A DNA stretch of 64,000 nucleotides, taken from assembly GCA_028023455.1 (NCBI GenBank), contig JAQFVV010000005.1, positions 7,626,001 through 7,690,000 of the forward strand. Direction: 5' to 3'. Below, piece after piece: positions 9,919 through 34,269 of this stretch. Each line of letters opens with the position of its first letter. The stretch's first letter is position 1. This DNA comes from Epiperipatus broadwayi. Taxonomy: Eukaryota > Animalia > Onychophora. A program made the translations under genes and the position numbers. The notes under the pieces are model-generated. The model saw only the letters and a list, made by a program, of their open reading frames with translations. It made no database searches and was not told the origin of the DNA.

Positions 9919-12900
9919 TTATAAAATTACTTTTTCAAAAAGTGGACAAATTGATGTTTTTAATATTTGTTTGCTGTAACACAGAAAAACGTCTGTGTTA
10001 GAAACAGAAACATTTATAACATAAGGTTCACTGATCAAAAGATCTTTTGATATCTCAACTACTTTGTCTAAATAAAAAAATTCATTGTGTAAGTTTTCTT
10101 TTGTAATATTTTGCAATAAATTGTGTGCTGGTATGAAGAAATGTGGTAAATTTCCATTACAAAGAGCATTTTTTATTTTTGCGATGCTTTTCTCTAAATA
10201 AACGTTTTTTATATTTTCACAAGTACATGGAGTTTCTTCAAAAGCCCACAAACAACAAGTTTTTATATAGTAGGACTTCAATATTTTACTTTTATATTTT
10301 AATTTTAGGTGGTTATATACTCTTTTCTGATCTTCTGACATGACTTCACATAATATTCTTTACAAGATTTGAATACCACCTGGTAGCCATTTGCAAATAT
10401 CTTTTGAACAATATCATTACTGGGCCAGTACCTTTTCCTTGAGATTCAATTGTTAGCCTCTGATGGCTAACCAGGAAAGCTTAAACAGGGCACTATTTCT
10501 ATTTTATGATTAGCAAGTTTGTCATTATCAACATGATTTTTATAATTAATCAGTAGCATTTGCCTAATTCTAGATAAAATGTCATATCTATTCTCTAAAT
10601 TAAAATCTGTCAGGCTGCAATTACTTTCATTAGCATGGGTGTCTTCATTGATGATGTAATCCACATTATCATCACCACCATTAGTAGGTTCATTTTTATT
10701 GTCATCTTTATTATTATCAGAATCACTATTTTTGTTATTTGTTGAGGATTTAATGGAATTTTGCTTTTGTGTTTCATAACTTATTGTAGTTCTGGTATCT
10801 TGTTGACTGGTATTATGTTTTTTATAGTTTATTATATAAGCTATTATTTTTTTAAACTGTATAATAGTACTTCTCAAATTACTATTGCCATGGATTTTAG
10901 TTCCATCTATTTGTTTCTTAATATTTGCGAATACCTTAGCACGTTTATAATATTTGATTTTAACATTCAAATAACTAAAAGTTCTTAAATTATCTAGTGA
11001 CATATGTAAATGCTTAATCCTTTTCCCTGTCTCATAATCATTACTGACATTTTGATTTCCATTTCCTCTCTTTTTTTCAATTTTAAATTCATCAGTTGAT
11101 TGTCCATATTTTTTATTACAATCGAAGTACAATCCCAGGATTATCACTTTCATGAAATCATTTCTTCTCAGAAAGTTAATGACTGTCTGGAGTTGATTCA
11201 TTTCATTCATTTCCTTTCTAAAAAATATATTTTCATTTGTATCAATTATCGTCTTTTTAAGACTTTTTATTATAAAATTACAAAATATTCTGAAATTAAA
11301 AACAGAGTCATTATGACTTCCATGTTGAGGGTCTACCCATGGCACAGTGAATTTATTTTCATAATTATTTTTTGAAAATGAAAATAATTATTTTCAAAAT
11401 TGAATTCTGAATTATAAAAGTCTTCTATTTCCTCATTCACAAAATTAATTACAGTTATAATTTTTTCATCCAATATTATTTTATTTTTAATAACATCTAC
11501 AATTTGTGGCATCCCACACAGAGCTATACTTGTTATAATACAAAAAAATATTTTGTCTGTTGTCTCTAAAATATGATTATGCATATAAGAATTTACAGTA
11601 TTAGAATTTGGATTCTGTGATGTTATAAATAATAATTTGTTAAGCAACTCTTTTTCACATGTATTCTGCTTTTATTTGTGTTATTGCTAGTTGTTGAATT
11701 TTCTTCTTTGGCTTTAACAATGGAGTCAGTGATAGATTGATTTGGATTAATGATACAACCACTTAATATTCCATTAACCATCTTTAAAAAAGTCTCGTTT
11801 GCAATATTTTGGTGTTTATCTATATTTAAGAACTTTTCAATTTCACTATAAATAGTACATTTTATTTTATGTACATCGTTACATACACAATTAATAATAA
11901 TATTAATATAATTGTTAATATATAATAAACATTATTTTAGTTTGAAGTGAAGTTACAAAACAATCTATCTTCAGTTGTGACTGGATAAACTTTTTATTTT
12001 CTAAACAATACTCAGCAATTACATTTTTGAGATGCGAGTTTATGTTATTTTGTAATCCAGAAATAGCTTCATCTTTTGTGTCCAAAATACTACTTTCATT
12101 TTTACAAATAATTTTGTCAAAACTTTGATCAAATAAATCCATTAAGGTTTTAGTGGCGCCATCAGTTAATATTTTCATTGTGTAGTCTTTAATGATATCA
12201 GAGTTGAATGTGGTCATTATGTGTTTAACAAATAATAAAAGATCATCATCAAAATTATCTGATGTTACAGGGTCTTTTGTTACATTTGAGGAACTGCCCC
12301 TTGGCATTTTTAAATGCTCATCTTGAAATTTTCCACTATTAACTTTACAGTCAGATGTTTTTTTTAATTTTCTACTTATCCTTTTACTGCTTTCTATAAT
12401 TATTTCTTTTATTATTAAATTAAGATTCCATATAGATTCATTGACATTTAGAATAAATTCTTTAATGTTCTGCATAAATTTGTCCAAAATGTTTTTTTTA
12501 GTAAATTTTAGTAAGGATTTTAAATCAGCCTTTTTTCTAAAAATAGTCATATATGCCACTGTACATATTATTGCATTATATTTTATTTCTGCCTTAAATT
12601 TGTTTACTAACTCATTTGAATAACATTCCAATAATCTTCTTTTCTTTTCCTTCCATACTTCTTGAATAATGCCTTTTATTTCATTATTCTTATGCATGTG
12701 TATTTTATTGAATATGGCAGCAGAAATTAAATCAGCATCCAAAGGAAATAATCCTTCAACAGTTATTTGGCTTATAACGTTTAATAGTTCATTAAATATA
12801 TCTACAATCCGTTTTTTAAAATGATTATCTATTTTAAACCCAGTACATTTATTAACATTTTTATTGGACAAACTTTTCTAAGGTCTTCTCACATTACTTT

Positions 12901-13730
12901 ACATAGATTTTCAACATGGCCAAGATTAGAAATATATGACATAGGGCAGTTCTCCAACTTCAATATGGATTGTTCTAATTTAATCAAAAATGTAACCAAT
13001 TCATCTGACATGACAACATAATTTCCAGAGATTTCTTTAAGTAAATGCTTTATTGCAGTCTTAATATCAGAATAAGATTCCAATCTGAGAAAAACATTCA
13101 TTAAATGTTTTAAATATACAGTTTGTGCATAATGAAAGGAGTTGAAGAACTCCACCCTATAACAGGATAGATCATCCATTTCTGCTTTCACCAAAAGATG
13201 TGGTGAGGAAGAAGTTATTTCCTGTTTTATTTTGGTAGTCAATGTTTGTCAAAGTTCTTTAATATCTAATTCAGCTTCTGCTTCATTTGTGTATTTTATA
13301 AAACTGCATGGCTCATTTGGAGTAACTGGTGTTCCTTTAATCTTAACATATGCAGGATGGTCAGGGTTACTCTCAAAACTTTCTACATGAAAAAACTTCT
13401 CTATTTTTTTGTTAAGTGAATGTGAAAAATCTACATCAGATTTGTTCAATCCAAATAAAACAGATCCATCAGCACAACTTCCTTGAAGGTAAAACTTTTT
13501 AGTATTCAACCAATCATGATCAAATTTATCAGGAGAAAACATCTTGCTGTATATCTTTTATATAAAAAGGAAATACTATTATGATAACTTAGATGACTCT
13601 CTTAATCCAAATGATTTTGTACAGACAAATAATGTTACAGTAAAAAATCAGAAATAATATATTACTATTACGAATGATTCATTTTAAAGATTTCCGTGTA
13701 ATTTTACTGCCGACATCTTGTTCAGAAGGC
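9919..13730 (-). pseudogene. Mab-21/cGAS-like (cGLR) nucleotidyltransferase pseudogene M1 with ~900-codon internal insertion
   Basis: NTase motif QGS (13485-13477) and SDVDF (13437-13429), then HPAYVKI and SPHL. After the insert come EIVPCL-F-G(W)P, RKRYWP, GYQVVFK, SYYIKTCCLW and LPHFFIPAHNLL, which are Mab-21 family motifs. It has in-frame stops (CGA>TGA at 13249, TGG>TAG/TGA near 10450-10470), frameshifts, and loss of the FSAAE segment. Confidence 0.85.
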
Positions 13731-14399
13731 ATTAAACAGAGGCAAATCACAATCAGCGAGGATTTCTTGTATTCCTTGTAGTATCCTGTTACGTTTTCCC
13801 CCTCAGAATTAAAAAAACAATTTACAGAGTTTTATAAAAAAAAATATATAATAAAATATTAACTTTCTTCTACATCGCACTTTCTTTAATTCACATAAAC
13901 ATAGATAATCTTGTTATCTAAAAGAGAAAACTTAATTAGATCATTACATATATAAAGTTCATTTATTTTATTTAAGTTTTGTAAAAACTCAAAACTATTT
14001 TAACCAATGTATTTTTTTTGTAACTATTTAAATTCTAATCAAATAAATTATAATTTCAAAAAAAAACAAATTATTATTGTAAAAACAAAAATTTGTTTTA
14101 AGAAAATTAAATAATTATTTAAGTACGTTAAAGAAGTTGGCAAAAATGTAATATACCTATGTAATAGCATGTGATCATCATCAGTAAAGGATTATTTGCC
14201 ATTCTTAAATTCAACTTATTACATTAAATACAATTTAAATTTACATTCAACAACTTTTGTTTTGCTGGGGAGATATAATCTTTCTAACGCTTCCCAGTAA
14301 TGAAAGGTAGACACTTTTTTGTAGGACAGTGACCTCTAGTGTCTATTTACCGATTTATAATAAAATGTAATTGTAGCAATTGATATAAATTAAGTTATC

Positions 14400-14950
14400 C
14401 AAATATTGAGAAAAATTATAAAAAGGATTGATCAATATAAATTATCATTATGCTTTGGATTTTGTAGATTAGAAATGGCATTTGATTCTATAAAGATTTT
14501 CATAGTGATTAGAGGATTGGATCATCAAGATATAGACCCAGAATATTGTCATTATTCTGAAAATTATGCAAGAACAATAATTAGATTACATAGTAAGAGT
14601 AAATAATTTAATATTGAGACTTAATTCATTTGCATATATTAAGTCTAAGGTAAAGAATACCATAGTTTTCAATATGGTTATGATTATGAGGCATGGATCC
14701 TCGAAAGCAGTCAGCCTTAACTGAGTAATTAATATTTTCGTTTTTATAGCTTCTGCAACTTGCGTATTGCATGCGCTTTGTACATTATTGATAAAGATAT
14801 AAATAGGGTAATGCTATATCTCCAAATCATTTTACAGCAATATTATTAATAATATTTTGCGAATTAAAATAGAAATCTAAGATAATAAAAATAAATGGAC
14901 AATTTTTAAGCCATGTAGATTTTTCAGATGAAGTGGTCATTTTTGCAAAT
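14400..14950 (+). mobile_element. RTE-clade LINE reverse transcriptase fragment
   Basis: LEMAFDSIK...IRLH (the EKAFDS motif), followed by GNAISPNHFTA...INGQFLSHVDFSDEVVIFAN (degenerate GD-ISP-LF and LRFADD). Confidence 0.75.
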
Positions 14951-15161
14951 AATGTTTCAGGGAAAGGGAATAAATAAGTGAAAGGAATATTTGCTGATTT
15001 TATTCAGAAAAAAAAGATAAAGATGTATAGTCACGAATTAAAATATTTTAACAATTACAATTATTTTAATCAGATTATTAATACAGATGGAAAAATAATG
15101 CATACAATTAATCATATAATTGATCTTACAGGGCATTCTTTTTGAAAAGAAATTTAATATC

Positions 15162-15901
15162 TGTGGTATTTTGTAAAAAATGCATAAAAGTTTATGCATT
15201 CCAGAAAAACTAGTATTTATTCGAGAGGTTGTTTTTAGTTCGTGCACTGATATCTGAGGAATTTAATTAAGGCATAATAATGGCGAATGATAATTCCAAG
15301 AAATATTTGCTGATTGCAAATATTTCTAGATAAGAGACCTTACCTTATTGGACAACGTAATTAATTGCTGCAGTTATCAGAAAGCTATAAAAGACTGTGC
15401 AACAACTACCGAGGCCAGTTATTTGAGTACAATTCCAGTAGAGATATCGCGCATCAGTGCTTGCGGTTAATGACCAGCGCCCAGTGGAAATGTAGACCAT
15501 GGGTGTAGCTGAAAGAGCCCACAGAGATGGGGAGACCGCAGCGGAGATATGAGAGCATCCGTTGCAAGAAAACAGTGAATTACCATCGTTGAGAAAGAAG
15601 AGATCAACATAGTGAATACAGAGTGTATTCAGTGAATTTGAGCAGAGCATCCATTGCAAGAGAACAGCATGGGAATTGAGAAATACCCTCGTTGAGAAAG
15701 AAGAGTTCAACATCGTGAATACAGAGTGTATTCAGTGAATTCGAGCAGAGCATCCGTTGCAAGAGATCAGTGTGGGAATTGAACATTAGCGAACTGTAGA
15801 GTGTTGCAGACTATTCACTATTCAGACTACGTAAAATATTGTGAGTCTTTCATTGTATATATTTATTTGCTGACTGCACAGTCATACTTGCGGATATAAC
15901 A
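15162..15901 (+). mobile_element. Candidate solo LTR D with internal ~92-103-bp tandem repeat
   Basis: GC-richer block that interrupts the RTE remnant. It runs from TGTGG (15162) to ATAACA (15901) with ATATC on both flanks. TATAAAA at 15386. Repeat units start gagcatcc at 15553, 15645 and 15748. The left boundary is uncertain. Confidence 0.5.
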
Positions 15902-16330
15902 ATATCAAAAAGAAATATGTATATGTGTTTGAAAAGAAAGATTTTAATAAACGTATTTTATCAGTTCTTACTTATTGAACTGAAACTTGGACACTTAACA
16001 GAAGAAAGATATAGAGACTTTAAGAAAGCTCAATAAAATATAAAAAGATTAGATGTTAGAAGCAACAAGATGTAATTAAAAATGAAATAAATGGATGAAG
16101 GAATAACTGATTTAATTGGCATTATTGAAAGAAATAAAATATTGAAATGGGATTGGGTTAAAGTAATCACCACAAGAGATGATAATAGATGGCCCTTTGA
16201 AATTTCAATTTGGATTCCAATAGATTCCTAAAAACTTAGAAAAAGCTATATGTGAGGTAGGTGGATGAAATAAAGATGTTTGCTGGTTTGATGTGGAAAA
16301 ACAGACTATGAGTTAATTAAACTGGATTAA
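15902..16330 (+). mobile_element. RTE-clade LINE 3' fragment
   Basis: ILSVLTY*TETWTL, and WDWVKVITTRDDNRWPFEISIWIP...RWVDEIKMFAGLMW. Similar to 54060-54430. Confidence 0.75.
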
Positions 16331-16519
16331 ACTTTCAAAGATCTTTATTAAGATGTTTGTCATTGAAAATGATAATAATTCTAATATCCTATCATTTTAG
16401 AACTAAACATAATTAAGTTTTTATGTAATATGAATATAAATTTATTAATTCATCAGACTTTTTGCTGTATCATTACAGTGATGGTCATTGAATATTTTCA
16501 TATTTAAAAATTACATTTA

Positions 16520-16810
16520 ATACATTATGGTTTCTCTGTGATTATATTGTATGAAAACTTCCATTACAAATCTTTCCAGACAAAGAACATTATGAGTTTT
16601 ATTATGACAGTTATAATATCTATAAAGCATCTATGAATGATTTTTAAATAAATCCCTTCAAGTTCAATTTGCTGATTTTTATTTCACTTCTCTGCAGAAA
16701 AATAAATACAATAGATTAGCTACATGAGATTTATTCAAAATAAAACTTCATAATCCTTTACTTCAAGACTTTGATTTGCAATTAAACACCTTTGAAATGA
16801 TTTACCTGAA
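16520..16810 (-). pseudogene. Highly diverged Mab-21-like C-terminal remnant M2 (decayed ORF-like sequence may extend to ~19500)
   Basis: Minus-strand reading DYEVLF*...IYFSAEK*...IYLKII...IIKT, collinear with GYQVVFK...FSAAEK...VYNHLK...YIKT of M4. Nucleotide match gtatgaa...ttccattacaaa to 10130-10162. Confidence 0.4.
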
Positions 16811-19799
16811 ATTTTTCCTTTGTTAATATGAACTAAGATTTCTGCTCATTAATTTCTCTGATCTATGATGAAAATTATTTCTACTTCACAAACTTTATGA
16901 TAGCAGTAGAGATAAGAAATGTACATGCATTATGACAGTTGATATTAGATAACAAATAGATTCTACAAATAGATTGATTGTGATGATTCTAATTAGTAGA
17001 TGTTGATAGCTGAGGATGATAGAACAACTTGTTGACAAAGATCTGAATGTGTTTCAAATAAGAAAGCAATTACAGCGTTTAATATTTTATACGTCTTATA
17101 ATTACAATTGTATTTATTTTTAAAACAGACTACTGTTACTAAAATTTAATGAATACTTGAAGTTTCAGTATGGTGAAGTATATTAGCAACTGCTTGATAG
17201 GAGTCAAATATTTGACAGCAGCTTTATTGAAAACAGTTTTATTAATGGATTATTTTAACACAATTATGATACTATTGTCTAAAAGAATTTCAGGAAATAT
17301 TAGTATAGTATGGATAATTTTTATTTGTTTAACTTAGGAGAATTCAAACAAAAATTAATGAATAAATTAATTGATAGTTAAAACATTTTTTATCTCACAA
17401 AATGTTACTGAAATAAAAAACACCTAGAATTGTCAGAATCATGGTATGTTTTGCGTTTATCCACAGACAGTCAAATATATTCCATACGTAGATTATAAAG
17501 AGAGAATTTTCTATTGATCTGTCCTAAAATAGTTCAAAATAACTTCAACTGGTAGCAGATATAAAAACTTAAACTGTAATTTGATTCTTCACCAATCACT
17601 GCTTAGCTTCACATTTTAATTAGGAAGTTTTACAGTAATATCTATAAATATTCTCTGAGTGGTTGTGTTAGTCATAAAAATAGGTTAAGAAAAAGCAAAA
17701 TAGTTTGGGATCAATTCTCACTCATAAAAAATATAACCATAGATAATTTGCGATAAACTTTACACATATTTATGCTCAAATATTAACTGACTTCATGACC
17801 ATGGTATTTCTGGAAATATTAGTGATGGTAAAATGAGAGTTCCTAAATCATTGAATAATAAGAACATTAATGAACACAACAGAGTAATTTTAGTAAACTG
17901 TATTTAATTTTTTCCTTTATAATTTGTTTTCAAGTATCATTATCTTTTTTTTGTATTATTTTCTTTGAGAATGAAAATCTTTGGACAATAAATGAATTAT
18001 TTTGCTTTGTGATTTCTATTCTTGAACTCACTCTAGCAAACTTTTTAACCAAGAATCTCCTATGTTGTGTCTTTCAACATCTGCACAACATTTAGTATGC
18101 TATTTCAAAATTTTAATCCAAATTATTTTCATTTACAGTCTAATAAGGCATATTCCTTTGTTTCCATAATGTTGAAAATAAGTCATTCACCACTATAAAG
18201 ATGTTTAGAGATCAGCCAAACAGAAAATCTTAAACACATCTCAAATTTATTTAAGTGGTTACATGATTTTACTATTTAATCAATGCTATTTAAGAAGCTC
18301 TAGATAGTTTATAACATATATCCATTAGATATATATTTGTGATGTTTAGTAGCAAAGTCTTTATCATCTTTTATTATTATAATCACTTCTAATATTCAGT
18401 GGATTTAATAAATTTTTATTCATATTTCTCATTGATGCTTATAATTTCACTTTTATGTTAACTGATTTCATTAGTTTTACAATTTTCAATATTTTTTTAA
18501 TATTTTCCTTTCTACATATCCTAAATACTTATGACCAAAAGATTTTTAATAAGTAAAAAAGTAAATAGTAATAAGATATTTATACTTATTATTGGAAACT
18601 ATTTTTTGAAAGCCTGTTTATTTGAGATCTCACCTTCAGTGTTTTATTAGTTTGGCAATACTCTTTTTAAATTTTACAGTATCATATTCTCTCATTAAGA
18701 TATCTATTTCATCTAGTTTTTAAATTTATAATACACTATGTAAACTTCTAATTTCTTTCTCATATGTTTCAGTTTTATTCTCTATTTCATTGGTATCATT
18801 GAAATGGGTCTTTTTTATTTTTACATTATTAATATAAATATCCATAATTAATGTTTTTCGTAATTGGTTCTTTAGAATTATATATTTAGTTACATCATTT
18901 AATGTGTTCTCAAATCTTTTCATTATAAAGTTACATAGATTTGAAATTCGAAACAGTATCTTCTCATTCAATTTCAAGGAGATATTTTAAAAATAAAAAT
19001 GACCGTTTTGAAAATTAATTTTTCAAGAAAGTTGAGTTATAAAAATCTTCTATTTCCACATTTGTAAAATGTATTACAACTACTTTCATTATAACTTTTT
19101 TTAACAATGTGTTTGTTTTCTATATTTCACTTAAAGTTTTATTAAATCAAAAATATTTTTGGCAGCTTCTTAAAAACAAACATATAAAATACCTGTTCAA
19201 TTTCAAATAGGAATGATTCTTGATTGTAGATGATATCATACAATTGTTTTTCATGATCAGCTAATTTCCTTTAATTTGTTTTTATTTATTAACTATATTA
19301 CTATTAATCGAGTCTTATTTATGTTAATATTTTTAAAAGAAGTAATTCTGTTTGATATTCAAACTACTTACTGTTCCATTAATTTGCTTTAAACAAATTG
19401 TGTTGTTTATCAAGTTTTAAAATGTTTTTTTGTCTGTTACTCTTTCTCTATTGTTCTGTATGAATTTTCTAATAATTTGTTTGTCTTAAAATATCTATGC
19501 TACTCCAGATCTTATAATAATAAGATGAAATCTTAAAAATGAATTCGAAAATCGATTATTAGCCACAGCAAGACGTTTCAGCTTCTCAATTTTAGCCTAA
19601 ATAATAGCGTGACAGTTTTCACATATCTGTGTTAAAAGCAGGTCATTGAATTGCAAAATGTTTTTGTATTATTTCGTAATTGATATAAATGAAAAAAATT
19701 ATTACTTTGTAAAGCAATGAACATTGTTAAACACATCGTCATGTTCAAGAATCACGTGACTTCATGAATATGTTATAAACAAACAAGTTTGTGACAATA

Positions 19800-20010
19800 A
19801 GCCAATAAACATCACATGACCACCACTTCTTATGATTGTGTATAACTGTTATTAAAACAGGCAAAACTCTCTACATATTGCCACTCAATGCAAGCCAGAG
19901 TAATAAATGGATGTCAGAAGGCTTGTGCATAAAATCCCTATCTAGTGCCTATTCATCCAATATCCCCAGAATAGTTTCTGGCTTGTGGCCTTCATCAGTG
20001 AGGAGGCAAC
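19800..20010 (-). repeat. Hammerhead-bearing repeat copy; hammerhead-like core at 19963-20005
   Basis: Minus strand CTCCTCA-CTGATGA-aGGCcacaaGCCa-GAAA-ctattC-TGGGGA. Stems I and II pair; stem III carries a G>T change relative to the ACTAGT of the other copies. Confidence 0.7.
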
Positions 20011-20049
20011 CAACATATACTCTATTATTTTTATTAGATTTGAATACTA

Positions 20050-20750
20050 TTTGAGGCAATTTTTGAATAATATTATGATTGGACCAATATCTTTCTCATG
20101 AATTTCAATTATTAGCCTCTGGTGGTCAGCCTGAAAAATTTAAGCAGGAAACTATTTCTATTTTATGATTAAATGATTTGATAATTAGTTAATAGTATTA
20201 TTATGCTATATCAATTCTTTGCATTGATATTCATCATGCTAAAATTATTTTCAATGGTAAAGGCAACTCCATTGTTGATGTAATTATCATCATCAGAAGA
20301 CTTTTTTTATTTTCATCACAATTCTTTTATTTCTTGTGGAGAGTTTAATAGAATATTACTTCCATGTTTCATATCTCATTGTATCTTTGGTATCTTGTTG
20401 ACTACTAATATATATTTTATTGTTTTCAATTCTAACATTCAGTTGCTTAATTATTGCACCAGTACTTTTCAAATAATTATTGTCATTAGATACATATTTA
20501 TGAAAAATGTCAAATGCATTACAACATGTTTCCTAAGATTTTCAAAAACGCTCCTTGTAAAAATTTTCTTTATTAGTATTTTCTTGCATTGTCAATATTT
20601 TCATAATGATTTTCTGCATCATTGCTATACCTCATAAATAACCAAATATTCCACACAATTTATTTCCAGATTGATATATTTTGTCCTTTTCTCATAAGTT
20701 TCACTGCTCTTGTCTGCTTTATAAAAATTATTTAACTGTGTTTTGTTTTT
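20050..20750 (-). pseudogene. Mab-21/cGLR pseudogene fragment M3, truncated by an L1 insertion and a repeat insertion
   Basis: NHKIEIVSCLNFSG*PPEANN*NS*ERYWSNHNIIQK, plus DAENHYENI matching DVAGNHYENV of M4. Confidence 0.8.
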
Positions 20751-20789
20751 TAATACTAATGGTTTTTTTTGAGAAGTATAACTTTTATT

Positions 20790-22800
20790 TATTCTAATAG
20801 TTACATATTATTTAAAGATCATTACAACAAGTTTGCATTACAGAAAATCTAATTTTATTGACTTTACCTTTCCTGTTGAGTGAGGCATTATGAATCAACT
20901 GGCATCAGGCAATGTAAATAATGACTGTGTTTCCTCAAACATTGTTGATTGTGCGATTGATTTATCTTTATCTTTAGTTTTTTTAATTATATTTATTAAT
21001 AATTGTGTTGAATTATTAGCTGGCTGGTCAAATAATAATTGCATCTTATTTTCCACATCAAGAAGAATAGGAATGTTGATAACCTAATCAGTCGAAAATA
21101 TCCCTTCTTAATCGCATTTTCAAGAGAAAGAATCTTATGATAGTCTGTCTTCACATAGATATTTATTGTTCTTCTGTGACAGTCCAGTGTCTCACATTGA
21201 AATATGATATGTTCCATGGTTTCTTCCATTTTTGTGCACAGTTGGCAAATGGGATCAACATTTTTGAAACCTCTTTCATATGCTAGAAAAGTATTTGTTG
21301 GCAATGCATGTAGGTTCACTTTCAAGATAAAATCCAATTATTTTGTTTCAAGGTCCCAGTATCTAAATTTAGAGATGATTAGTTTATTTATATGAAGTAC
21401 ACCAGGAGTAACACTGCAATCTACATTGGTAAGTCTGAAGGCTTCCCAATAAAATATTTTATTATCAAAGGTATTTATTGTTATCTTTGTGTATTTTGTT
21501 ACATAATTGCACATTTTAGTAAACCATAAAATCCAGCTGGGTGAAGGATGGTGTGTGAGGTTTACAGGAATTTCACATTCTATATTGGGGAATCTATTAT
21601 TAAGTTTCTGTATGGCATTGAATGATCTTTGAAAGAGAAGTGTCAAAATGTGAGTGCGAAGCCAATCCATTCAGATTTCTAGGTTTTTGCATTTTCCTTA
21701 AGCTGATTGATCGCTACTGTTTTTCTTCTCCACAATAGCTTTGAGCAAAGCGAGTTCATTTTCTGTTCGAATCATTTTATAGGGTTAATCACAGTAATAT
21801 AATAATTAATCCTGGGAAAGATTAACATGTTTAAAAGCAAAACTTTCCCATATAGTGACAAACATAGTCTGGGGAGAGAGACAGTAATCTTTTGTGTTTT
21901 GGCCAATATTGATTCTTCGATTTCCTTTCTCATTTCAGAAGGAGATTTAGCAATTGCAAAACCCAGAAATGTCTGAGGTCCTTCTATGAATCCCAAAGAG
22001 ACCTTCCTGCCAGAGTTTAGTTTCCACACTGCTGATTTACTTATGTTAAAAGTTAAACCAAACTCTTTTGTGTACTTTTTTAGTATCCTCTGTAATTTTG
22101 GGATAAATTTCTGGGAATGCAGAAAAACCACTATGTCATCCATATATGACAAGTGGTTTATTTGTTTGTTTAGTAATGGCAAAAAATACCTGGGAGATTA
22201 CCCTCAATCTCTAACAGTAGTGGATTTATATATGCTATAAACAAAATCACACTTAGTGGTGATCCCTGGGGGATTGATTGGTAGGGCATGATACTCTTCC
22301 ATTTAGAGTCACAAAAATTTCTCTGTTATTTAATAAATTATCAATCATTCTAATGAACACTTCTGGTACAGACTATTCCCATAGGATTTCCAAAAAGATT
22401 TTCAGCCAAACAAAATGGAAAGTGGCCGCAATATCCAATTGGATTGCAATTGGACTCGATTTCCTACCTTCCCTTATAATGTTCTTATTCCTTCTGTTTT
22501 CCCTACAATTCAACAATTAATTGTTCATATTTTTTAATACTATCTAAGCACTGTTTTAGCATTATCAATTGTGTGAAGTCATTTCTTGCCAGAAAGTTTA
22601 TTAATATATGAAATTGGTTCTTTTTTCATTTATTTGCATTTTAAAAAATATATTTCATTCACTTCATTTAATATTTTTTAGTCTCATTCTAAAATTAAAA
22701 ATTGGCTTGTTATGATGTTGAAAGGTTGGCCATGTTAAAATTAATTCATCTTCATAATTATTCAAACTTTAAATTAAATATATATCAATGTATATGCAAA
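20790..22800 (-). mobile_element. L1/Tx1-like LINE remnant (RT plus C-terminal CCHC knuckle)
   Basis: PIAIQLDIAATF, QSPRGSPLSVILF, HLSYMDDIVVF, FGLTFNISKS, GKVLLLNMLIFPRINY and CQLC...MEHIIFQC, spread across frameshifted ORFs. Confidence 0.85.
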
Positions 22801-25646
22801 CAAAGGGAGGAGTAGATTATCCACATTCAGGCTATGACTTGAAAGCACTCTAAATGGTGAACAAAGAATTAGGAATAAAACAAATCACCTATTCTTGGTA
22901 GCTCTGCTGCTTATAACTATATCTTTGACAACATTGTTGATAATTCAGAGTGAAATTAATACATCAACCAGAGGGAATGTGGCATTTAAGAGTTATTCAT
23001 ACTAGGCTGCAGACAGCATCTGACATTAACATCTTGATTTTAGTAATTAAGATATAAACTTTAAATTAAACATAGCTCAATGTATATGTAAACAAAGAGA
23101 GTAAATCTGTAATAAAGTGTGCTTTTTAGTTCTCTCATGCATCTCTCTTTTTTTGTTGTAGCTATCTTAATGAACTTTTATTAATTTTATGATTATTACA
23201 ATTTTTCTTTTAAAAGGTACAGTGAAGTCATTATCTATGCTGTGTCAATATACACTACTTTAGTTATATGCTAGTCAAAAAATATATAAAATACAAAAAG
23301 TAAAAACATTAAAATTTGTAAATTTAATATATTTTATAACATGGCAGTGTCCACTTTCTATGTTGGGGCATTATATTTATGTTTGTTAATAATATTTTGA
23401 GTGTACATTGAAAACATCAGTGCAACTAGAGAAACCATAGTTTACTGATAATGAAACTCTTATTTCATTGGAAAAAAGTTTCTGAAAAAAAAAATCATTA
23501 TGAGTATATTGAATTGTGACCCAAGACTAACATTTGACTATTCATTTTATTTAAAAAATAAAGATACAGTACCACACATTTATTATTATTGTTATTTAAA
23601 TGAACATAAATGTGTGAACACATACAATAAAATTATTTGTAATGATGCTTTTTCAATGCATTATTAATAACTGCATTAGTATTTTTTTTACTTTTATTTA
23701 TACTATAATCTTAATTTATATATGCATACTATACCCATAGATAAGCATCCATGTTGTGTTAAAAAATACTGTACACAATTCAGAAACAACATGTATTCTA
23801 TTGTTATCAAAACTTATGTGATGTACAATGTACATGAGGAGAGGGATTTGAAACAAATATAACAGACATCATGACTCCAATTAATAGATAAATAGCCTAT
23901 AAGAACAAAATTTGAAACAGTTATAAAAATAAATTAATTTAAGGGGAAAATGGGTGTATTCATATATTGGAGAAACCTCTTGTTTGTTGGGTAAAAATGA
24001 AAGGCATAATTTAATACATAATTAAATTAAAACAAAATAATTTGACGTGAAAAATTTTGTTCTTTATTTTATAGTTGTAAAATAATATATACAAATTATT
24101 TTCCATAATAATAAAATATTAAACAAAAATCAGAATTCTAGATTAAGAAATATTCTATGGTTATTGAATCATGTGATCTTGGTGAATTATGTGACCAATG
24201 TTTTACTATTTCTAATAAAATAAAAATTTTGCATTCAATTTCTATATACATAATATGATTTATTTTTATCATATATATATATAATGGCTAAAATAATATT
24301 TAAATTGCTTTCCATAATTGAGTCTCCAGATGGATTAGATGTAGATGATGATTTTTAGACTTGATCCTGGCTTGAATTTAACCCTATACCAAGAATTTGG
24401 CATTGAACACTAGGCCACAATCATTTCCATATATTCTTGTATAGGTTGACTATCATCATACATTTTTAATTAAAAGAGTTCTTTTATCTATACAAAAATA
24501 CAAAGAATTGTTTTGAATTATTAGTTCAATTACTGCTATTCAGTATGCTGATATAGGTATTAAAATATTTTGTATTTTTACAGAGTTATATTATTATTAA
24601 CAAAATCCAGTCAGTTTATAAAAAAATATTTTAATATATACAAACCATAGATAGTAAAATGAATTTTCATATTTTTAATAAAATTAGGATTTGTAATGAA
24701 GAGGAAAAAATTTACTGTTAAAATTCAAAAATTCACAATTAAAAAAAAACAACCTAGAAACCATTTACATTAGTTTACTAAAATAAGAAAAAAGTTATTA
24801 TCTCATTTAATAAATTGTTTTTCTCTTCACCAATAAAAATTGTAATTATAAATATGCAAATTTTTTTTGCATGCGTTAGTAAAGCTATAATTATACTATA
24901 ATGTTTAATATGCCTGTTTAGCACTTTCGAGATTTAGTATTCAAATCTCATACTCATAGCTTTATGAATGAAGACTGTTGTGATTTATTGTACACATATG
25001 CAAATGAACTTGAATTTTTAATTAGTTAGTCCATTGTTTGGAGAGAGCAAAGCATGCCTCTCTTCTATTAATGACACTGAGATCATTTGCTACGTAAAAA
25101 GCTTCTTTGACTTTTCTTTTGGCATCACTCTTCTCTGTGCAAATTATTTGCGCAGAACTGGGTTCGAATACATGGACTGCAACTGCTTGGTGGTCCCAGG
25201 AGATTGATGTTTCTTCATTTTTATTTTAAAACCTGTTATTTCAAATAATAATTTCATTTACATCAATATTAACACTGAACAGATATATATATATATTGTC
25301 AATAATATTATACTTTATACTACATGGCATTGTTTTGAAACAACTGAAGTTTTTCAACTAAAGTTCAAAAATAAATGTTAATGGTTTCTATAAATTAAGA
25401 GTTTTGATCATCTTCATCTTTGTATATGTGCTCCAAACACACAACAGATATTTATTAAGTAATTCAGTTTTACAATCATTAAACATCACATGATCACCAT
25501 CTCATATATGGAGAGTTTCTGTCTGTTTTACAATCATTGTATTGTTCTTTATACATTTTAAAGAAAAAAAATCTAAATCTTTGGTCTACCTTTATTTTTT
25601 ATAAGACTGAAATTTATAGAATAATGCTTTATTATTTTTGAGTTAT

Positions 25647-28600
25647 TTATAATTTTATTTTTTCAAAGATTGGAAAAATTGATTCTTTTAATATTTGCTT
25701 ACTATAATGTAGAAAAATTTTTGTGTAGGAGTTAGAAAAGTCAAAAAAACGTGGTGCCTTTTTCCATAGATATTTTTTGTCTATATCTTCTCTATATATA
25801 TATTTCTTATATATAGTCTCTTTTGCTATATTTTGCAATAAATTTTGTGTTGGTATAAAGAAATGTGGCAAATTTCCACAATAAAAAGCATCTTTTATTT
25901 TTTTGAAGCTTTTTTCTAAATAAACTTCTATATTTTCAAAAATACATGGTGTATCTTCAAAAACCCACAAACAACAAGTTTTTATATAATAGGATCTCAA
26001 TATTTTATCTTTGCAATTAATTTTTAGATGATTATAAACTTTTTTCTGGCATTCAGTCATGGTTTCACTCAATAATTTTTCAGCAGCTGAAAAGAAAGTT
26101 GACCATCATACATCCTATTGGTTTTACAAGATTTGAATACTACCTGATAACCACTTGAAACAATCTTTTGAATAATGTCATGGCTGGGCCAGTACCTCTT
26201 CCTTGATAACCAGTTTTTGGCCTTTATTGGCCAGCCTGAAAAACTTAAACAGGGCACTATTTCTATTTTATGATTAAAAGATTTCTCTTTAGTGATATGA
26301 TCTTCATATTTGACTAATAGTACTTTTATGGCTCTAGATAAGGTATTATACTTATGCTCTGAATTGATATCCATAATGGTGTAATCAATTTCATTGGTAA
26401 GGGCATCTTCATTCATGAAATAATCATCATTGATAGACGCTTTTTTATTTTCATTTTCATTATTTCTATACTCATTTTCTTTATTATTTGTGAAGGGTTT
26501 AATAGAATTTTGCTTCTATATATTACATTTCATAGTATTTCTAGTAGGTTGATTGATTTTGTAGACTTTACAGTTTTTAAAAATAGCTTTCAATTTTTTA
26601 ATGTTTTTTATCAATATGTGCTAAATACCTATAGCCAATAGGTAGACAGTTAACTAGAATATCAAAAGTATTACTGCATCTCTCCAGAAGATTCACAGAA
26701 ACTCCATTTTTTAAAAATTTGTTTTGTATTATTTTACACAATTTAATAACATTTTCATAATGATTTCCTGCAACATCCTTATCTCTCATTAATACCATAA
26801 GATGTTTGAAATGATTTATTAACATTTCAAAATGTTTATTCATTTTCTCATGAGTTTTATTTTTTGTGACAGTTTTATAAAAATTACTCAAGTGTATTTT
26901 TTTTTTTCATGTTTAGGTCCTACAATTGATATTTTTTGTTACAATCTAAGTACAACCTTAATATTATCAGTTTCATGAAATCATTTTGTGTCAGAAAATG
27001 TATTAATATGTGGAATTGCTTTTTTTCATTTATTTCTTTTCTAAAAATATATATTTTCTTTTATATTATTTAACACCTTTTTTAGTCTTTGTCGTATAAT
27101 GTTACAAAGTATTCTGAAATTAAAAAGTGGGTCATTACGGCAGCAATGTTGAAGATCTGGCCATGAAGAAGTCAATTCATCTTTGCAATTATTAATAATC
27201 ATTCGAAAACAATTTTCCAAAAGATATCTTTCAATGTGGAAATCATCATTTTGAAAATTACCTTCAATTGAATGATTTGAATTATAAAGCTGTTCTATCT
27301 CCTCGTTTGTAAAATTAATTACAGCTACATCATTTTTATCATATATTTTGTTTTTAATAATATCTATAATTTCTGGCATTCCATATAGGGTTATGATTGT
27401 TATCAATTCAAAACATTTTATCTGTGGTGTCAAAAATATGTTCATCCAAATAACATCTTATATCATCAGAATTAGATGCCCATAAAAAATTTTCTATTAA
27501 TTTATTATACAGTTTATTTGTCCAATTATATACTTTTCTTTTTTTAATTGTCTTATTATTAGTTACTGAATTTTCTTGTTTGGTCTTAAGCATTGAAGTC
27601 ACTGGGTGACTGATTCGCATTGATAATCAAAATGCTTAATATCTCATCAACTAGCTTTAAAAAGATCTCATTTGTAATATTATTGTTTTCATCTATATTT
27701 AATAACTTTTTAATTCTACTATAAATAACATATTCTAATTTTTTTGTATTATTCCATACATAGTTTATAATAGTATTAATATAATTATTAATATATAATG
27801 AACATATTTTATTTTGAAGTGAAGTTGTAAAACAATCTAGCTTCAGTTGTGACTGGATATGCTTTTTATTTTCTAAACAGTATTCATCAATTACATTTCT
27901 GAGATGTGAGTTTACGATTTTTCGTAATCTAAAAATAGTTTCATCTTTTGCATTCAAAACATTACCTTTGTCTTTAAGAATAATTGCAACAAAACATTGA
28001 TCAAACAAATCCATTAAAGTTTTAGTGGCACCATCAGTTAATATTTTCAATGCATGGGCTCTGATGATATCAGTGCTGACTTAACGTTTTTAATAAATAA
28101 CAAAAAAACATCATCAATATCTGATGTCACATGATCTTCAGTTACAACTAGAGAAGTTCTACGCTTATCTTGAAATTGTCCATTAATTTTGCCCCCAGTT
28201 GTTTTTTTAATTTTCTTTTTATTCTCGTTACTTTTTATAATAATTTCTTTTATTATTAAATTCATGTCTTGTATAGATTCATTGTTATTTTGCATGTATA
28301 CTTGAATACTTTGCATAAATGTTGCAGATATGTTTTTTAGTGTATTTTAATATTGTTTTTATGACACATTTTTTTTTACTATACTTTGTTATGATTAATT
28401 TTGCACTATGCATAATTACTGCCTTGAATTTGTTTATTAACTTAAGATAACTCTGTTCCAAATATATTATTTTATTTTTCTTCCATACTTGTTGAACAAT
28501 GCATTTTAATTCATCATTCTTAAGGATGTGTATTTTATCAAAAATTAAAACAAAAGGCAAACGTGAAACAATACTTTGGCTTATTAATGTTAATAGTTTA

Positions 28601-29453
28601 TTAAATAAACCTACAATTGGTTTTTTTAAATATTTAATTATTTTAAATCCAGTATTTTTATTAACAGTCTTATTCCATGAACTTTTTCTAAAGTCATTCC
28701 AAATTTCTTCACATAACTTTTCAACATGGCCAATGATGAAAGAACGTGATTGAGATCGCTGTGTCATAAAAAATACTGGTGAGACTAGTACTAATTTTTT
28801 TAAAAATATAATTCACATTTTTAAGTGATAATGTAATTTCCAGAGATATCTTTAAGTAGTTGTTTTACTGCAATCATAATATCAGAATAAGTTTTAAATT
28901 TGAGAAAAATATTTATTAAATTTTGTAAGTAAACAATTTGTGCATAATGAATGGAGTTGTAAAACTTTACTGTATAACAAGATAAGCTATCCATTTCTGC
29001 TTTTACAAAAAGATGTGGTGAAGCAAAAGCAATTTGTTGTTTTATTTTGACATTCAATGTTTGTCGAAGTTTCTCTAAGTCTAATTCTGCCTCTTCTTTG
29101 TCTTGACATCTTATGAAACTTCAGGCATCTCTTAGAACAGTTGGTCTTCCTTTAATTTTGACATGGGTGGGGTCATCAGGGTTACTCTGAATCGTTTTTA
29201 TATGAAAAAATGTTTTTATTTTATTATTAATTGAATATAAAAAATCTATATCAGATTTGTTTGGTTCAAATAAAACAGATCCATCAGCACAACTCCCCTG
29301 AAGGTAAAACCCGTTAGCATTCAACCAATCATGATCAACTTCACAAGGAGAAAACATTCCATTAGATATTTTATAAACAATATAATTATGATAAACTATA
29401 TATATCCTTCTTAATCCAAATGATAGTATAAAACAGATTATCTTACCATGCAT
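25647..29453 (-). pseudogene. Mab-21/cGAS-like (cGLR) nucleotidyltransferase pseudogene M4 with ~915-codon internal insertion
   Basis: LQGSCADG...SDIDF (QGS at 29300-29292), SPHLFVK, then the insert, then KIEIVPCLSFSGWP..NWLSRKRYWPSHDIIQKIVSSGYQVVFK, SYYIKTCCLW and LPHFFIPTQNLL. Collinear with M1 along its length, with different stops (TGA at 29121) and frameshifts. Confidence 0.88.
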
Positions 29454-29989
29454 TAACGATTAACAAAATTCTGTGATTTTGAAGAACTCATTAAAGTTAA
29501 TTGTGCAATTGTAGTTGCAATAAATTCTGTTGAAAAATTATTAAGCAGTAAGTATTCACTAATGATGATGATGACTTGTTACTACTTTTCTTATAGTATT
29601 CTGTTGCCATAGCTTTTCCTAGAATTGGACTTATAGTTTAATATATGCAATTCGTCTGAATAATATTTAATATAATAAAACTTTTTAAATAGTTCAAAGA
29701 TTATCAAAAAGTTTTTTAAATTACAGTAAATAAACAATGAGATAATAAAAAATGGATTTTAATAGTTATTTTCTATACCTTCTTATTTAAGAGAGAGAAA
29801 TTAGTTTAAATAATTTCATATAGAAAGTTCATTTGACTTTTATGAAAATTCAAAGTATTTTATCCAAAAGATTTTTTTTTACTTATTTAAAATCTGCATA
29901 AATGAGCGGATTATTGTTATAAATGCAAAATCAAACTTAAAATATTATTTCTTTGTATTATTTATCAACGTTGTGTATGTAAACTAAAT

Positions 29990-30180
29990 AAGTGGAAAAA
30001 TAATGTCATATCTACTTAATAACGTGATTTTAGGGAGAAGATGTAAGTCATTTTCACGCCTCAATTTATTATACTAAAATACAACTTCATAAATCAAACA
30101 TTTGATAACTGTATTAACAATATGAATGCAGATAAGAAAATGGCTGTTGCATGGGTAAGCAGTCTAATATTTTTCAATGA
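29990..30180 (+). mobile_element. RTE-like LINE fragment
   Basis: Degenerate reading resembling the RTE C-terminal segment seen at 15902-16330 (K-KTFDNC-L-Y-C pattern). Confidence 0.4.
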
Positions 30181-30184
30181 TAAT

Positions 30185-32260
30185 GTGATGTGAAATGGTT
30201 ACTCCTTTATCAAAGTCAGGAATCTCTTAACCACTACATCCAGAGATACCTATTAACCACCTTATTTTCTCTTTCCATTCCCCACCCTAAATTTTTCCCA
30301 TATTCTTTTTTATTCTGCTCTACCTCATTTCCAGAACATGTGTCCACTCTATGGCCTTTATACTTAGATTCTTCTTATCTTTTTGCAAATCCAGCATAAA
30401 AAACAAGAATCCACTTTCTGTATAATCATTTTGTATATATTTATTCTCCCACAACTTCATTTGTGGCTTGTAAGCATTTACATTCAATTACAAGATGCGT
30501 AATATTTTTCATGCCTTCCTTACATAACTTGCAGAATAAATTTCTCCATTTATGTGTATATTCTTTTGTTGTTAACAATTCTGTTCAAGCCTTAAACAGT
30601 AAGTGATTTTATTTGCTACTATCATACCCAATATTCTGTTTACATTTTTACTCTTCATATTAGTTCTCCATTTCTCCAGATCCTTATTTTTTTTTTATTA
30701 ATGTATCTATTCTTCTATCCCATTCTTTGCCACTATAATACTCAACAATTCTTTTAACACAATTGTCCCACCTTTTGTACAAGTATACTGGCATAAATTT
30801 TTTATCCAAATCTTACGCATACCATACAATCTTTTTCACCCATCTTGTTGCCTACTCTTTACTCATAATCCAATTAAATACAATTTGTGCTATTCCTTTA
30901 CTATCCATAAATCACAATCTAGTGAACATTTTAATTTTGCTTTTTGCATCTCTCATATAAAAACTTGATCACCCCACTTCTCCTTGAATTTCCTTTTTTA
31001 CCATCCACACACCTGCATCTAATGTATGTTATCCTTCTTCTCTTTATACTTTTTCTAAGTAATATAATACTTATTTACTTACATATAATGCATCATTATC
31101 ATAAATTAACCTTGACACTGGCACTCCTTTCCATACAATTCTTGCTACATCATATTTATTATATGAAAACACTATTAATTTCTTTATCAGCCCCTTTCTT
31201 TTTTTTTTGCTTCATTTACCATTTTTTTCTCCTATTTGTCCAAGCAATTTTTCTGATTACTTAAAATGATTCACAAATAGTTATACCTATTCATTATATT
31301 TAAATTTATATCCTCCAATAAAAATTCTCTTTCCCCAGTATTTATCATCATTACTTTTGATTTTTCTTTATTAAATTTAATCCTCATTTCTTTACCCACC
31401 TTTGTGAAAGTCTTCTGCATAACTTCCACATCCTTCTTACTTTCTGTGCACAAGAACATATTGTCAAGCAAATAAAAAACCTGATAATGTATTCTCTCCT
31501 TTGCCATCTATTAATGGTATCTCTATCAGTCTTCCTAGTCTTTCTATTGTTCTCTCCATTTTTTTCTCAAATGTAACAAACAAAAATAGAGGACATAGGT
31601 CAACCTAGCTCTAGTCCCACCCCATTTTTAACTCTAATGTTCTAATTGATACATATAGTAATTATTTTCATACAATCTCTTAATAAAATCCATTAAAGCT
31701 CTATTCATTCCCAAATTTATTAAACTTATCCATGGTCTGTTTTTATTTACTCTATCATATACCTTTTATAAAAACAATACATAGCTACCTATTTGTATTT
31801 CTATTCATATCTATAAGTTTTATGACTACAAATAAACTATCTCCTATATGCCTATCCATTCTAAAACATTTTTGAATTTTTCTATTTTCTTCCATTCATT
31901 TTGCCACCCATCTAGCCACCATATATGCAAACACTTTATATAAAACTGATGTTATTGATATGGGTCTATAATTGTTTTTTTCTATGGTCCTTACTCTTTC
32001 TTTACATAATAGTCTCACTTTTGTATTATTCCAACTATCTGGAAATTCTGTTTTCTGTGCCATTTTATTAAAACATGATAATAGATTCAATTTTGCCCTA
32101 TTTCCCAAATTCATCACCATCTTCACTGCCCATCCATGTAAACCTCTTGTCTTTCCATTTTTCAATGTTTTCCCTGTCTCATTCGATTCATTTTATATAA
32201 ACTAACATTTCCATCACTAAGTGTTATTATTACTCTGTCCTTCACATCTAACATTATTTC
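30185..32260 (-). mobile_element. CR1/L2-like LINE reverse transcriptase remnant
   Basis: MKNGKTRGLHG, FPDSWNNTKVRLL, NNYRPISITSVLYKVF, LLDNMFLC (degenerate LFADD), IKFNKEKSKVM and NIMNRYNYLG. Same family as 52640-53850. Confidence 0.85.
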
Positions 32261-32739
32261 TATATCCATTACATACTTATTTAAAATTGTCTCTAATTTT
32301 TCATTTAGGAATAAAATAGAGTCAATTTGGCATAAATATCACTAGATTTTATTTCTACTCTAAAAAAATTCTTTTAATTTTAAACTTATGTCATTTAGCC
32401 GCACTTCTTTAAAACAGACAAGTTAGTATGAATATAATAAACAATGCTAATCTTGGTCTAGATAACATTTACTAATCTATTATACTTGGTATACAATTTA
32501 TTGGATTTGATCATCCATTAACCATGTTGAGATGTTATATATAGAGCTCGCAAAATATAACATTTGTAAACACAAGCTTATTAAATTAGGTCGTGTGACA
32601 TCTGACTTGATTTTTTTTGTAACCATGTTGAGATGAACAAAGAAAGCCACTAATAAGTGTACCATGTAACATGAACACCAAGAGAACTATCTCAAGCACC
32701 AATATATCAACCAACCTATATAAAAAATGAACAAAGCTC

Positions 32740-32870
32740 CACTACAAGACTTAGAGGCTAAAATGTAATATAATGTAAAATTTATGCTTGGCTCACTCTT
32801 GAGACTTAGAGGCTGACAAATATAAGATTATGTCTGGTTTACTTTTGAGACTTAGAGGGTGATAACTATA
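32740..32870. repeat. Short degenerate tandem repeat containing gacttagagg x3
   Basis: agacttagaggct near 32746, gagacttagaggct near 32800 and gagacttagagggt near 32848. Confidence 0.6.
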
Positions 32871-34269
32871 AATATACAATGATTGGGGACAGTGCTGAAA
32901 TAAAGACTTTAAAACATGACAACCTCAAAACAATGAAAACCTTTCCATTCATCAATCAATACAGAAAGCTACATGTTCAACCATTAATGACCCAATGAAA
33001 TCAATTTTAATTCAAATTATATAGTGCTTTCTTTTATATGCTTTAGTAAATAATTATATTTAATTCATTTAGCATGACTTCTTTGCCAACTTTTTTTTTA
33101 ACATTTGAGCAGCACAATGCAATTTCAAAATGAGTCATTTTTTTGCTGTTCAGAAGTATCTACTTTTATAATTGGTACTTTAAAATTATTTGTTCATTCT
33201 CCTATAACAAGTATCTATTAACAAGTCCAAAGTCATCAACTTAGAGGTCATCCTTATTCATAGGATTAAACTTTGCCTCTATTTTTTTATTAATATGCAG
33301 ACCCTCACTCGGAATGACCTGAAATATGGTAACTGATTCATCTCTTAAAAAAATTACTTTTCCATTTTTTTCTTTCTAGCTTTATTTTTTACTTTTATTC
33401 TCACATAATGAGTTCTTGAAATTAATTTCTTAGACAATCTATCTAGCTTAATTACATACCTTAACTTTAGGTTTCTCTTCTCTAGTTCTGTAATTTTTAA
33501 TCTTGGTAATTTCCTGATACTTTTTCTTTTATACACCTTACCAAGCAAAATACTATTATATTTAATTTTATTAAACTGATCTTGATTATCTATTTCTATC
33601 ATATTTAAGTAACCTATTTTTTTTTCCCAATTATTCATTTCTTCAAATGTGCTTTTATGTTATTTGTATTTTTAAACACAATATATTATAACATTGCTGT
33701 CAACATCCAAGGCTTTGTGTGTTAACATTAAACTTATTTAGACTATTAATATCATGATCATTTTTAATTCAAGTACTCTGGCATTTATCATTCATTTTAT
33801 CTGTTTCATCTAACTTAGAATTATCTATCTGTGGTGGTTCTAAAATTATATCATGATTAGGTTTATCTATTTGATCAGCTATCACATTTTCTATATTATT
33901 TTAAACCTCAAAATTTATTTCATTAACTTTACTTTGACTCCCCTCTTATTAATGCTACAATGAAGAAGTGATGATTGCCTCCTTTTGTGAAAGTAGATGA
34001 TCCAAGAGATTTCAATTGGTTCCCATAGCAATATTATTTTAAAATGGACAACTTTATTTTAAAATAAAAAATGGTAATAAAATTTTATCTTTTACAATTA
34101 ATACAGTTTTTATTATTATTTAAAATTCCTTCATATTTATTGGTACACATAACTTTTTATATTTTAGAATACATAATAAAAGCCATGCATGTAAATTCAG
34201 TCATAAACATTACATATAAAATTAAAAATATTATTGTGATATATTATATATGTTAATCCTTTGTTTTGA

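Follow-up and report, generated by a model that had tools for sequence, protein, structure and literature searches.

A large coding insert divides the nucleotidyltransferase core in a family of cGAS-like genes of Epiperipatus broadwayi

cGAS-like receptors (cGLRs) are regarded as compact proteins of 350–500 residues with the ligand surface on the back of the fold, and the extra modules known from them are terminal. We describe here a cGLR-like gene family of Epiperipatus broadwayi in which a large coding insert lies within the nucleotidyltransferase (NTase) core. The family is represented, in broken form, in a stretch of 64,000 nucleotides (assembly GCA_028023455.1, contig JAQFVV010000005.1, positions 7,626,001 to 7,690,000 of the forward strand; "the window" means this whole stretch). 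We read the region from 9.9 to 29.4 kb of the window, with a probability of about 0.6, as a decaying cluster of two frame-broken pseudogenes, M1 and M4, and one remnant, belonging to a lineage-expanded, intronless Mab-21 cGLR family. Comparison with intact paralogues in the same assembly shows that the split architecture is real and protein coding, that active-site and pocket residues are conserved, that the insert evolves faster than the core, and that the genes undergo birth and death.

The closest described systems differ from this family in distinct ways. cGLRs with appended TPR and ankyrin modules, and multi-cGLR fusions, have been reported (Li et al. 2023, PMC9980059). They resemble the split family in joining a cGLR core to an extra, presumably protein-interaction, module, but the module there is terminal and the NTase contiguous, whereas here the module is inside the catalytic domain. 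In the proteins P0082, P0115, P0121, and P0139, Neuralized/SPRY is N-terminal to a contiguous Mab-21 domain, which is matched in one stretch (Pfam profile positions 11–36 to 194). Compared with cGAS (PDB 5XZB, 4K9B, 7FTN), the split family lacks the Zn-ribbon and has a helical module of 250–1200 residues in the hairpin before the strand that bears the third acidic metal ligand (the third acid); no DNA-binding surface was identified in it. In MB21D2 (PDB 7LT1), coral Sp-cGLR1 (8GJY), and oyster Cv-cGLR1 (8GJW), the third acid is about 90–150 residues past the DxD motif, whereas this distance is 372–1304 residues in the split family. The split family also differs from the MB21D2/cGLR1 clade in having Glu rather than Asp at the third acid, and its long forms have no obvious N-terminal spine helix. 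For MB21D2, 61 unresolved residues have been reported (PMC8410604); the MB21D2 alignments that we made cover the C-terminal half only.

Paralogues were sought with a peptide of the EIVPCL region in the 5.6-Gb assembly that holds the window. The search gave at least 26 places, mostly inside single stop-free frames of 665–1639 residues, and 22 open reading frames (ORFs) were retrieved, 17 from "long" and 5 from "short" genes. All 22 are intact and intronless, encode 656–1636 residues, and have the GS/DxD half first and the EIVP/Mab-21_C half last. Two of them, L018 and L012, are on the same contig as the window, 271 and 351 kb beyond it. The insert between the two halves is in frame and free of stops for 253–1198 codons in the 22 paralogues, and the frame is kept across both junctions. 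By comparison, open runs in shuffled insert DNA of about 25% GC average about 47 codons and reach about 100 at most. The ratio of nonsynonymous to synonymous substitution rates (dN/dS) between paralogue pairs is 0.24–0.36 for the core halves. For the insert, it is 0.54–0.60 in older pairs and 0.9–1.2 in the recently duplicated cluster on contig C6269. The long open frames and the pattern of dN/dS thus indicate that the insert is translated and constrained, and that it evolves about twice as fast as the core. The first-pass annotation of the window had argued that the insert is coding because M1 and M4 share conserved segments; the 22 intact paralogues support this far more strongly than the mutual conservation of two pseudogenes. 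At the L003 locus (G000:C13273:108000-115500), a frame of 1443 residues has a run of N in the insert, which may be an assembly gap, with a short duplicated motif on either side, and its true length is uncertain.

The assignment to the Mab-21/cGAS-like NTase family, which had been made from the window alone, is borne out by Pfam domains, PDB relatives, and alignment with cGAS motifs. Both Mab-21 domains, PF03281 and PF20266 (Mab-21_C), score above the Pfam cut-off of 24.1 bits in every one of the seven intact paralogues that were scanned, as well as in the pieces from the window, in each case in the C-terminal part. The PF03281 match covers only profile positions of about 97–197, the second half of the profile. 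Among PDB sequences, MB21D2, coral cGLR1, oyster cGLR1, MAB21L1, and cGAS are the best-matching relatives. The motif h[QT]GS-X8-20-[DE]h[DE]h is present as LQGS, 13 residues, and D.DF, in M1 and M4 as well as in the paralogues. In 21–22 paralogues, the G, the S, and the second D of DxD never vary and the first D hardly does; the S ahead of DxD is conserved as well, across 21 paralogues. The third acid is in an h[DE]h strand of the form I-E-I/V and, as had been noted for the window, is Glu rather than Asp: this holds for M1, M4, and 20 of the 22 paralogues. It does not fall within 50–90 residues of DxD; the spacing is 372–414 residues in short forms, 693–1304 in long forms, and about 1000 in the window copies. 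The N-half elements ahead of the insert account for the canonical spacing of 50–90 residues.

Outside these motifs, the invariant or nearly invariant columns are Glu-Val-Pro of the third strand, GWP...W..R.R.WP, the K of VVFK, (R)LSFS.AE, a further K, and SY.IKT, and the paralogues that carry them are only 23–40% identical overall. HMMER aligns the K, (R)LSFS.AE, K, and SY.IK elements with VPK, RLSFSHTE, LMKY, and SYHVK of mouse cGAS. In human cGAS, the residues in contact with nucleotide are K362, R376/S378/S380/E383, K414, and Y436/K439. The C-half alignment has equivalents of these contacts in columns K52, S65-F66-(S67)-A69-E70, K89, and Y100-K103, so that the nucleotide pocket of a cGLR is represented. 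The same genome also has a candidate STING-type receptor, seen as exon matches to PF15009 (STING_LBD) above cut-off on contig C39 (best E 1.9e-7), which span profile positions 2–160 in pieces. These exons occur at no fewer than two places within 90 kb (at least L026 and L027; G000:C39:7821566-7910303), and there is possibly more than one STING gene.

How does the divided chain fold? An AlphaFold2 model of the 1118-residue paralogue L007, made from an alignment of 16 paralogues, has a mean predicted local distance difference test score (pLDDT) of 71 and a predicted template modelling score of 0.64. In this model, residues 20–139 or so form strands and one helix, residues 896–1110 form the C-lobe, and residues 140–890 are wholly helical, the longest helices reaching 65 residues, apart from a disordered segment at 812–874. 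A bilobed fold of the cGAS type, with its NTase core caged, is found. Over about 70 residues at its start and about 250 at its end, the insert is modelled with confidence in the full-length protein and not when modelled alone, which suggests that it packs on the core through its base. The insert has about 10–13% each of Ile, Lys, Asn, and Leu, and the length differences among long-form inserts are concentrated in its distal, low-complexity part. Thus, the model and the composition show a helical insert rich in Lys, Ile, and Asn, in line with the earlier description of a helical, Lys/Ile/Leu-rich insert that ends in an Asn/Asp-rich linker, and we also agree that the strands flanking it are normally a short loop apart, as a tight hairpin.

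We found no relative of the insert. It has no match in Pfam, among PDB sequences, or among folds, and no usable match in the ESM Atlas. The inserts show no internal repeats. An exhaustive profile search of 1.84 billion representatives gave 3442 matches, and none of those listed is to the insert: the listed matches are to the C-half or, weakly, to the N-half. A word-index protein search with the full 1267-residue protein of L001 gave no match at E <= 0.001.

What might these proteins do? By our reading, the intact paralogues build one cGAS-type NTase fold from two distant parts of the polypeptide. The N-terminal part, of about 140 residues, contains helix α-2 and two strands besides the DxD metal ligands and the GS activation loop. 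The C-terminal part, of about 230 residues, contains the strand of the third metal ligand (Glu), the residues of the nucleotide pocket, and the Mab-21_C lobe. The insert of 250–1200 residues sits in the normally tight hairpin and is joined directly to the third-ligand strand, apparently with its base on the core and a central bundle of very long helices projecting outward, and the disordered Asn/Asp-rich linker returns the chain to the core. In this scheme, the insert may be a fast-evolving recognition or oligomerization module; the first-pass annotation had suggested a possible ligand sensor or regulator wired into the active site. Its movement might set the position of the third-acid strand and so gate catalysis, much as ligand binding aligns the catalytic triad in cGAS and OAS. 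From the whole of the analysis, we give about one chance in three to the proposal that the intact proteins are still nucleotide-signal synthases with a recognition or oligomerization module that gates catalysis.

Several points weigh against this proposal. The gating step is pure inference. The insert modelled alone gives a poor model (pLDDT 57), in which only the central helices, insert residues 80–450 or so, are confident. In young duplicates, an insert dN/dS close to 1 can be explained by relaxed constraint no less than by diversifying selection. The third metal ligand is Glu instead of Asp, and it is lost in L018 (Lys) and L010 (Asn). The N-half profile gave nothing significant against Pfam and PDB; the top matches were the NTases URT1 and CdnE at E 0.5–0.7, aligned at GS/DxD, and therefore the NTase assignment of this half rests on the motif, its invariance, and the predicted structure. 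Finally, the residues before GS number about 20 in long forms, as against 40–65 in short forms and in coral proteins, and the N-terminal spine helix seems to be absent from the long forms, unless it is encoded in an upstream exon or provided by a helix within the insert.

These same observations, the Glu for Asp at the third ligand with its loss in two paralogues and the apparently missing spine helix, would fit intact proteins that are inactive scaffolds, in which the cGAS fold is only a platform and the function resides in the long helical insert, for example as a coiled-coil element of structural, cytoskeletal, or adaptor type. MAB21L1 has been proposed to act as a catalytically inactive scaffold. 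We consider this the strongest of the alternatives, and still an unlikely one. The G, S, and DxD residues, the third acid in 20 of 22 genes, and the K, RLSFS.E, K, and SY.K elements are invariant or nearly so across paralogues as divergent as these, and the core dN/dS is about 0.3. This conservation of the active site and constraint on the core make a role as scaffold only hard to sustain without a nucleotide-binding active site.

Returning to the enzyme proposal, its widest form is that the family is a new class of cGAS-like pattern-recognition enzymes, with more than 20 genes in one lineage, in which a sensor module inside the catalytic domain mechanically gates the triad, and that the hairpin is a general "plug-in" site, in corals also. 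We regard this wide form as doubtful. If it is true, a module of up to 1200 residues within the catalytic sheet would be a new way to couple recognition and catalysis.

The window itself contains the family only as dead copies. The cluster region is AT-rich, with about 25% GC, and has no long ORF, yet two collinear series of short ORFs on the minus strand jointly spell a protein of about 1250 residues. A six-frame scan with the family profile finds copies at 9922-13548 and 25650-29366, each covering profile positions 3–1077 in 8–10 frame segments. In both, EIVPCL is about 2.7 kb downstream of QGS/SDxD and SPHL, all of them where the first-pass annotation had placed them. The block MKILTDGATKTLMDLFDQ ... 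YCLENKK.IQSQLK is common to M1 and M4, as is the Asn/Asp-rich insert tail, and the M1 insert aligns along its length with the inserts of the intact paralogues as a homologous sequence. The features of M1 in the window are as follows.

9922-13542, minus strand: M1, near full-length pseudogene of the split cGLR-like family, from collinear tblastn and profile mapping over the whole protein
13138-13542, minus strand: N-terminal half of the NTase core, with LQGS, SDVDF, helix α-2, and the SPHL...CY.V.F strands, from ORF translations
13477-13482, minus strand: G21/S22
13429-13437, minus strand: D36/D38
13249, minus strand: TGA stop in the N-terminal half
about 13194-13206, minus strand: SPHL strand
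10524-13137, minus strand: insert, about 870 codons over four frames, helical, Lys/Ile/Asn-rich, with an Asn/Asp-rich linker at its end
9922-10523, minus strand: C-terminal half, with the third-acid strand, the GWP...W.SR.RYWPS motif, and Mab-21_C; family-profile positions 881–1077
10497-10499, minus strand: third acid, the Glu codon of HKIEIVPCL
10359-10467, minus strand: 46-nt deletion and stops in the C-terminal half
9919-10341, minus strand: Mab-21_C (Pfam PF20266), E 1.4e-10

M4 and the third copy have the following layout.

25650-29357, minus strand: M4, near full-length pseudogene
28947-29357, minus strand: N-terminal half of the NTase core, with LQGS, SDIDF, and the SPHLF strand; 98% amino acid identity to residues 1–178 of L001
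about 29292-29297, minus strand: GS
about 29244-29252, minus strand: DxD
about 29010-29021, minus strand: SPHLF
26288-28946, minus strand: insert, split into at least 8 frame segments
25650-26287, minus strand: C-terminal half, with the third-acid strand, the second half of the Mab-21 NTase domain, and Mab-21_C
26261-26263, minus strand: third acid, Glu codon
26069-26416, minus strand: Pfam PF03281, second half of the Mab-21 NTase domain, E 3.2e-10
25647-26072, minus strand: Pfam PF20266 (Mab-21_C), E 2.4e-08
20003-22765, minus strand: third copy, a remnant; the pieces 20003-20179 and 22488-22765 are adjacent parts of the protein, from tblastn and profile matches
20996-22182, minus strand: decayed reverse-transcriptase debris of non-LTR (long terminal repeat) type between the remnant pieces, with RVT_1 at 21772-22182 and zf-RVT at 20996-21337 (Pfam)

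With reverse-transcriptase debris between them, the two remnant pieces belong to a single dead copy that a retroelement has interrupted. At the nucleotide level, M4 shares 96.9% identity with the intact gene L001 (G000:C6269:91171-94971, on a contig other than that of the window), which encodes 1267 residues; it differs from L001 by 13 frameshifting indels of 1–34 nt and by in-frame stops at two positions, 29121 (TGA) and 26516 (TAG). M1 is 89% identical to the intact L021 (G000:C6269:6656), with five frameshifts, including 10- and 46-nt deletions, and five in-frame stops. Neither has an uninterrupted reading frame. M1 and M4 are pseudogenes, and nothing functional is encoded at these loci. 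The two copies that had been called full length are indeed collinear over nearly the full length, but they are not open genes, since their frames are broken by indels and stops. Protein-level analyses used the intact paralogues, which made a repaired consensus of M1 and M4 unnecessary.

The 7-kb L001 locus, flanks included, aligns with window positions 24493-31396 at 92–97% identity. This locus-wide match indicates that M4 arose by a recent segmental duplication, although the M4 locus may instead be an unusually divergent structural haplotype rather than a duplicate. Could the frameshifts in M1 and M4 be errors of assembly, with the genes of the window truly intact? Homopolymer errors do arise in long-read assemblies of AT-rich DNA. 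However, the indels here include lengths of 2, 7, 10, 34, and 46 nt, there are also stop codons made by substitution, and the 22 paralogues of the same assembly are perfectly open, so we hold this explanation to be highly improbable.

Two further explanations can hardly be entertained. An insert that is an intron or intronic element, spliced out to leave an ordinary cGLR of about 370 residues, is contradicted by the open frames far beyond those of shuffled DNA, by the frame kept at both junctions, by insert dN/dS below 1 in older pairs, and by AlphaFold helices that are confident (pLDDT 70–88) and packed on the core; the open-frame lengths and dN/dS thus speak against an insert that splicing discards. 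A family carried by a mobile element, or an insert derived from one, with copy number produced by transposition, is suggested by the many copies, all intronless, in a retroelement-rich genome and by the reverse-transcriptase debris within the remnant, but that fragment interrupts a dead copy and does not accompany the intact ones. Furthermore, none of the 16 inserts scanned has a Pfam match of any kind, including transposase, reverse transcriptase, and integrase domains, and similarity of flanking DNA is confined to recent duplicates, tandem or segmental, and is absent where divergent loci on different contigs are compared. The pattern of flanks and the absence of transposon domains from the inserts indicate that the copies spread by duplication of host genes and not by transposition; a match of the insert to a known transposon protein, which the first-pass annotation had named as refuting its reading, was not seen in the same scan.

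Where does the insert come from? The nearest foreign relatives of the C-half include named proteins of corals (Porites, Oculina), a tubeworm (Lamellibrachia), and a crinoid (Anneissia). The distance from DxD to the third acid falls into classes: 112–152 residues in canonical proteins, 355–401 in a coral group, and, in this genome, 372–414 in the 5 short genes and 693–1304 in the 17 long genes. The split layout recurs in uncharacterised coral proteins such as Porites lutea XP_073227771.1 (P0159) and Oculina patagonica KAL9965290.1 (P0013): YGS...GDxD and an SPAVT-type strand, close to the N-terminus, are followed by about 230–300 extra residues and then by GxD.VPAL..GWP. By alignment, the coral insert is at the same position, between the SPAVT-type strand and GxD.VPAL. 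The coral proteins differ in that their inserts are partly of low complexity and have no detectable similarity to those of this genome, the third acid is Asp, and they form their own clade. Comparison of coral, short, and long inserts by hhalign gave no similarity (probability about 0.1 for coral against this genome). The proposal of a distinct cGLR architecture therefore holds for the split core and the large insert, which are real, but not for a unique insertion site, since the coral proteins have a spacing of 355–401 there. A foreign Mab-21 protein from an ENA metagenome assembly, P0065 (1127 residues), has a weak N-half match at 39–85 and a C-half match at 757–940, and may carry an insert of about 650–670 residues.

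In a tree of the C-half only, the 22 genes of this genome form one group (Shimodaira–Hasegawa-like approximate likelihood-ratio test, 94), with the short forms basal. The long forms are one clade (93), whose first branch is the gene with a spacing of 693, and the coral split proteins are a separate clade. The simplest reading of these alignments and branchings is that the insert was elongated progressively within this lineage. Only two canonical, contiguous Mab-21 genes were found in the genome. One is the conserved Mab-21 orthologue, 85% identical to insect proteins and 81–83% identical to spider and horseshoe-crab proteins. The other has the following location.

L029:790-2067 (G000:C45:188289-189566): cGLR-like ORF of 425 residues, with a contiguous PF03281 match at profile positions 2–195

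With just these two canonical genes, the split family is the dominant cGLR-like repertoire of this genome, by about ten to one, and the window copies add the picture of birth and death that is typical of immune gene families.

Such proteins would not have been collected in the published surveys. The filter of Li et al. requires h[QT]GS-X8-20-[DE]h[DE]h-X50-90-h[DE]h (PMC9980059), and Slavik et al. applied the same X50-90 rule and excluded Diptera proteins of more than 700 residues (PMC8410604). The X50-90 rule and the 700-residue limit mean that the split family and the coral proteins are dropped from both censuses. Because these filters drop split proteins, published cGLR counts for some animals may be underestimates. 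Full-text literature searches found no description of an insertion inside the cGLR core; Li et al. and Slavik et al. describe terminal fusions.

Elsewhere in the window, at 37600-38943 and 62370-63632, both on the minus strand, there are intact ORFs of 447 and 420 residues with at least nine C2H2 zinc fingers each (zf-H2C2_2, E 1e-68 and 4e-72). An 84-nt tandem periodicity at 38099-38902 is the zinc-finger repeat. In 2-kb windows, the GC skew is strong and of opposite sign in two places, -0.45 and -0.23 at 30001-34000 and +0.38 at 52001-54000, and no high-scoring tandem repeat explains these values. In the genome as a whole, nuclear copies of mitochondrial COX1 number at least 97, for example L023:1501-2838 (C2:8155834-8157171), and the best preserved are broken by TGA only. 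In these copies, TGA at Trp positions, Ile at conserved Met, and Arg at conserved Ser suggest that the source sequence used the invertebrate mitochondrial code.

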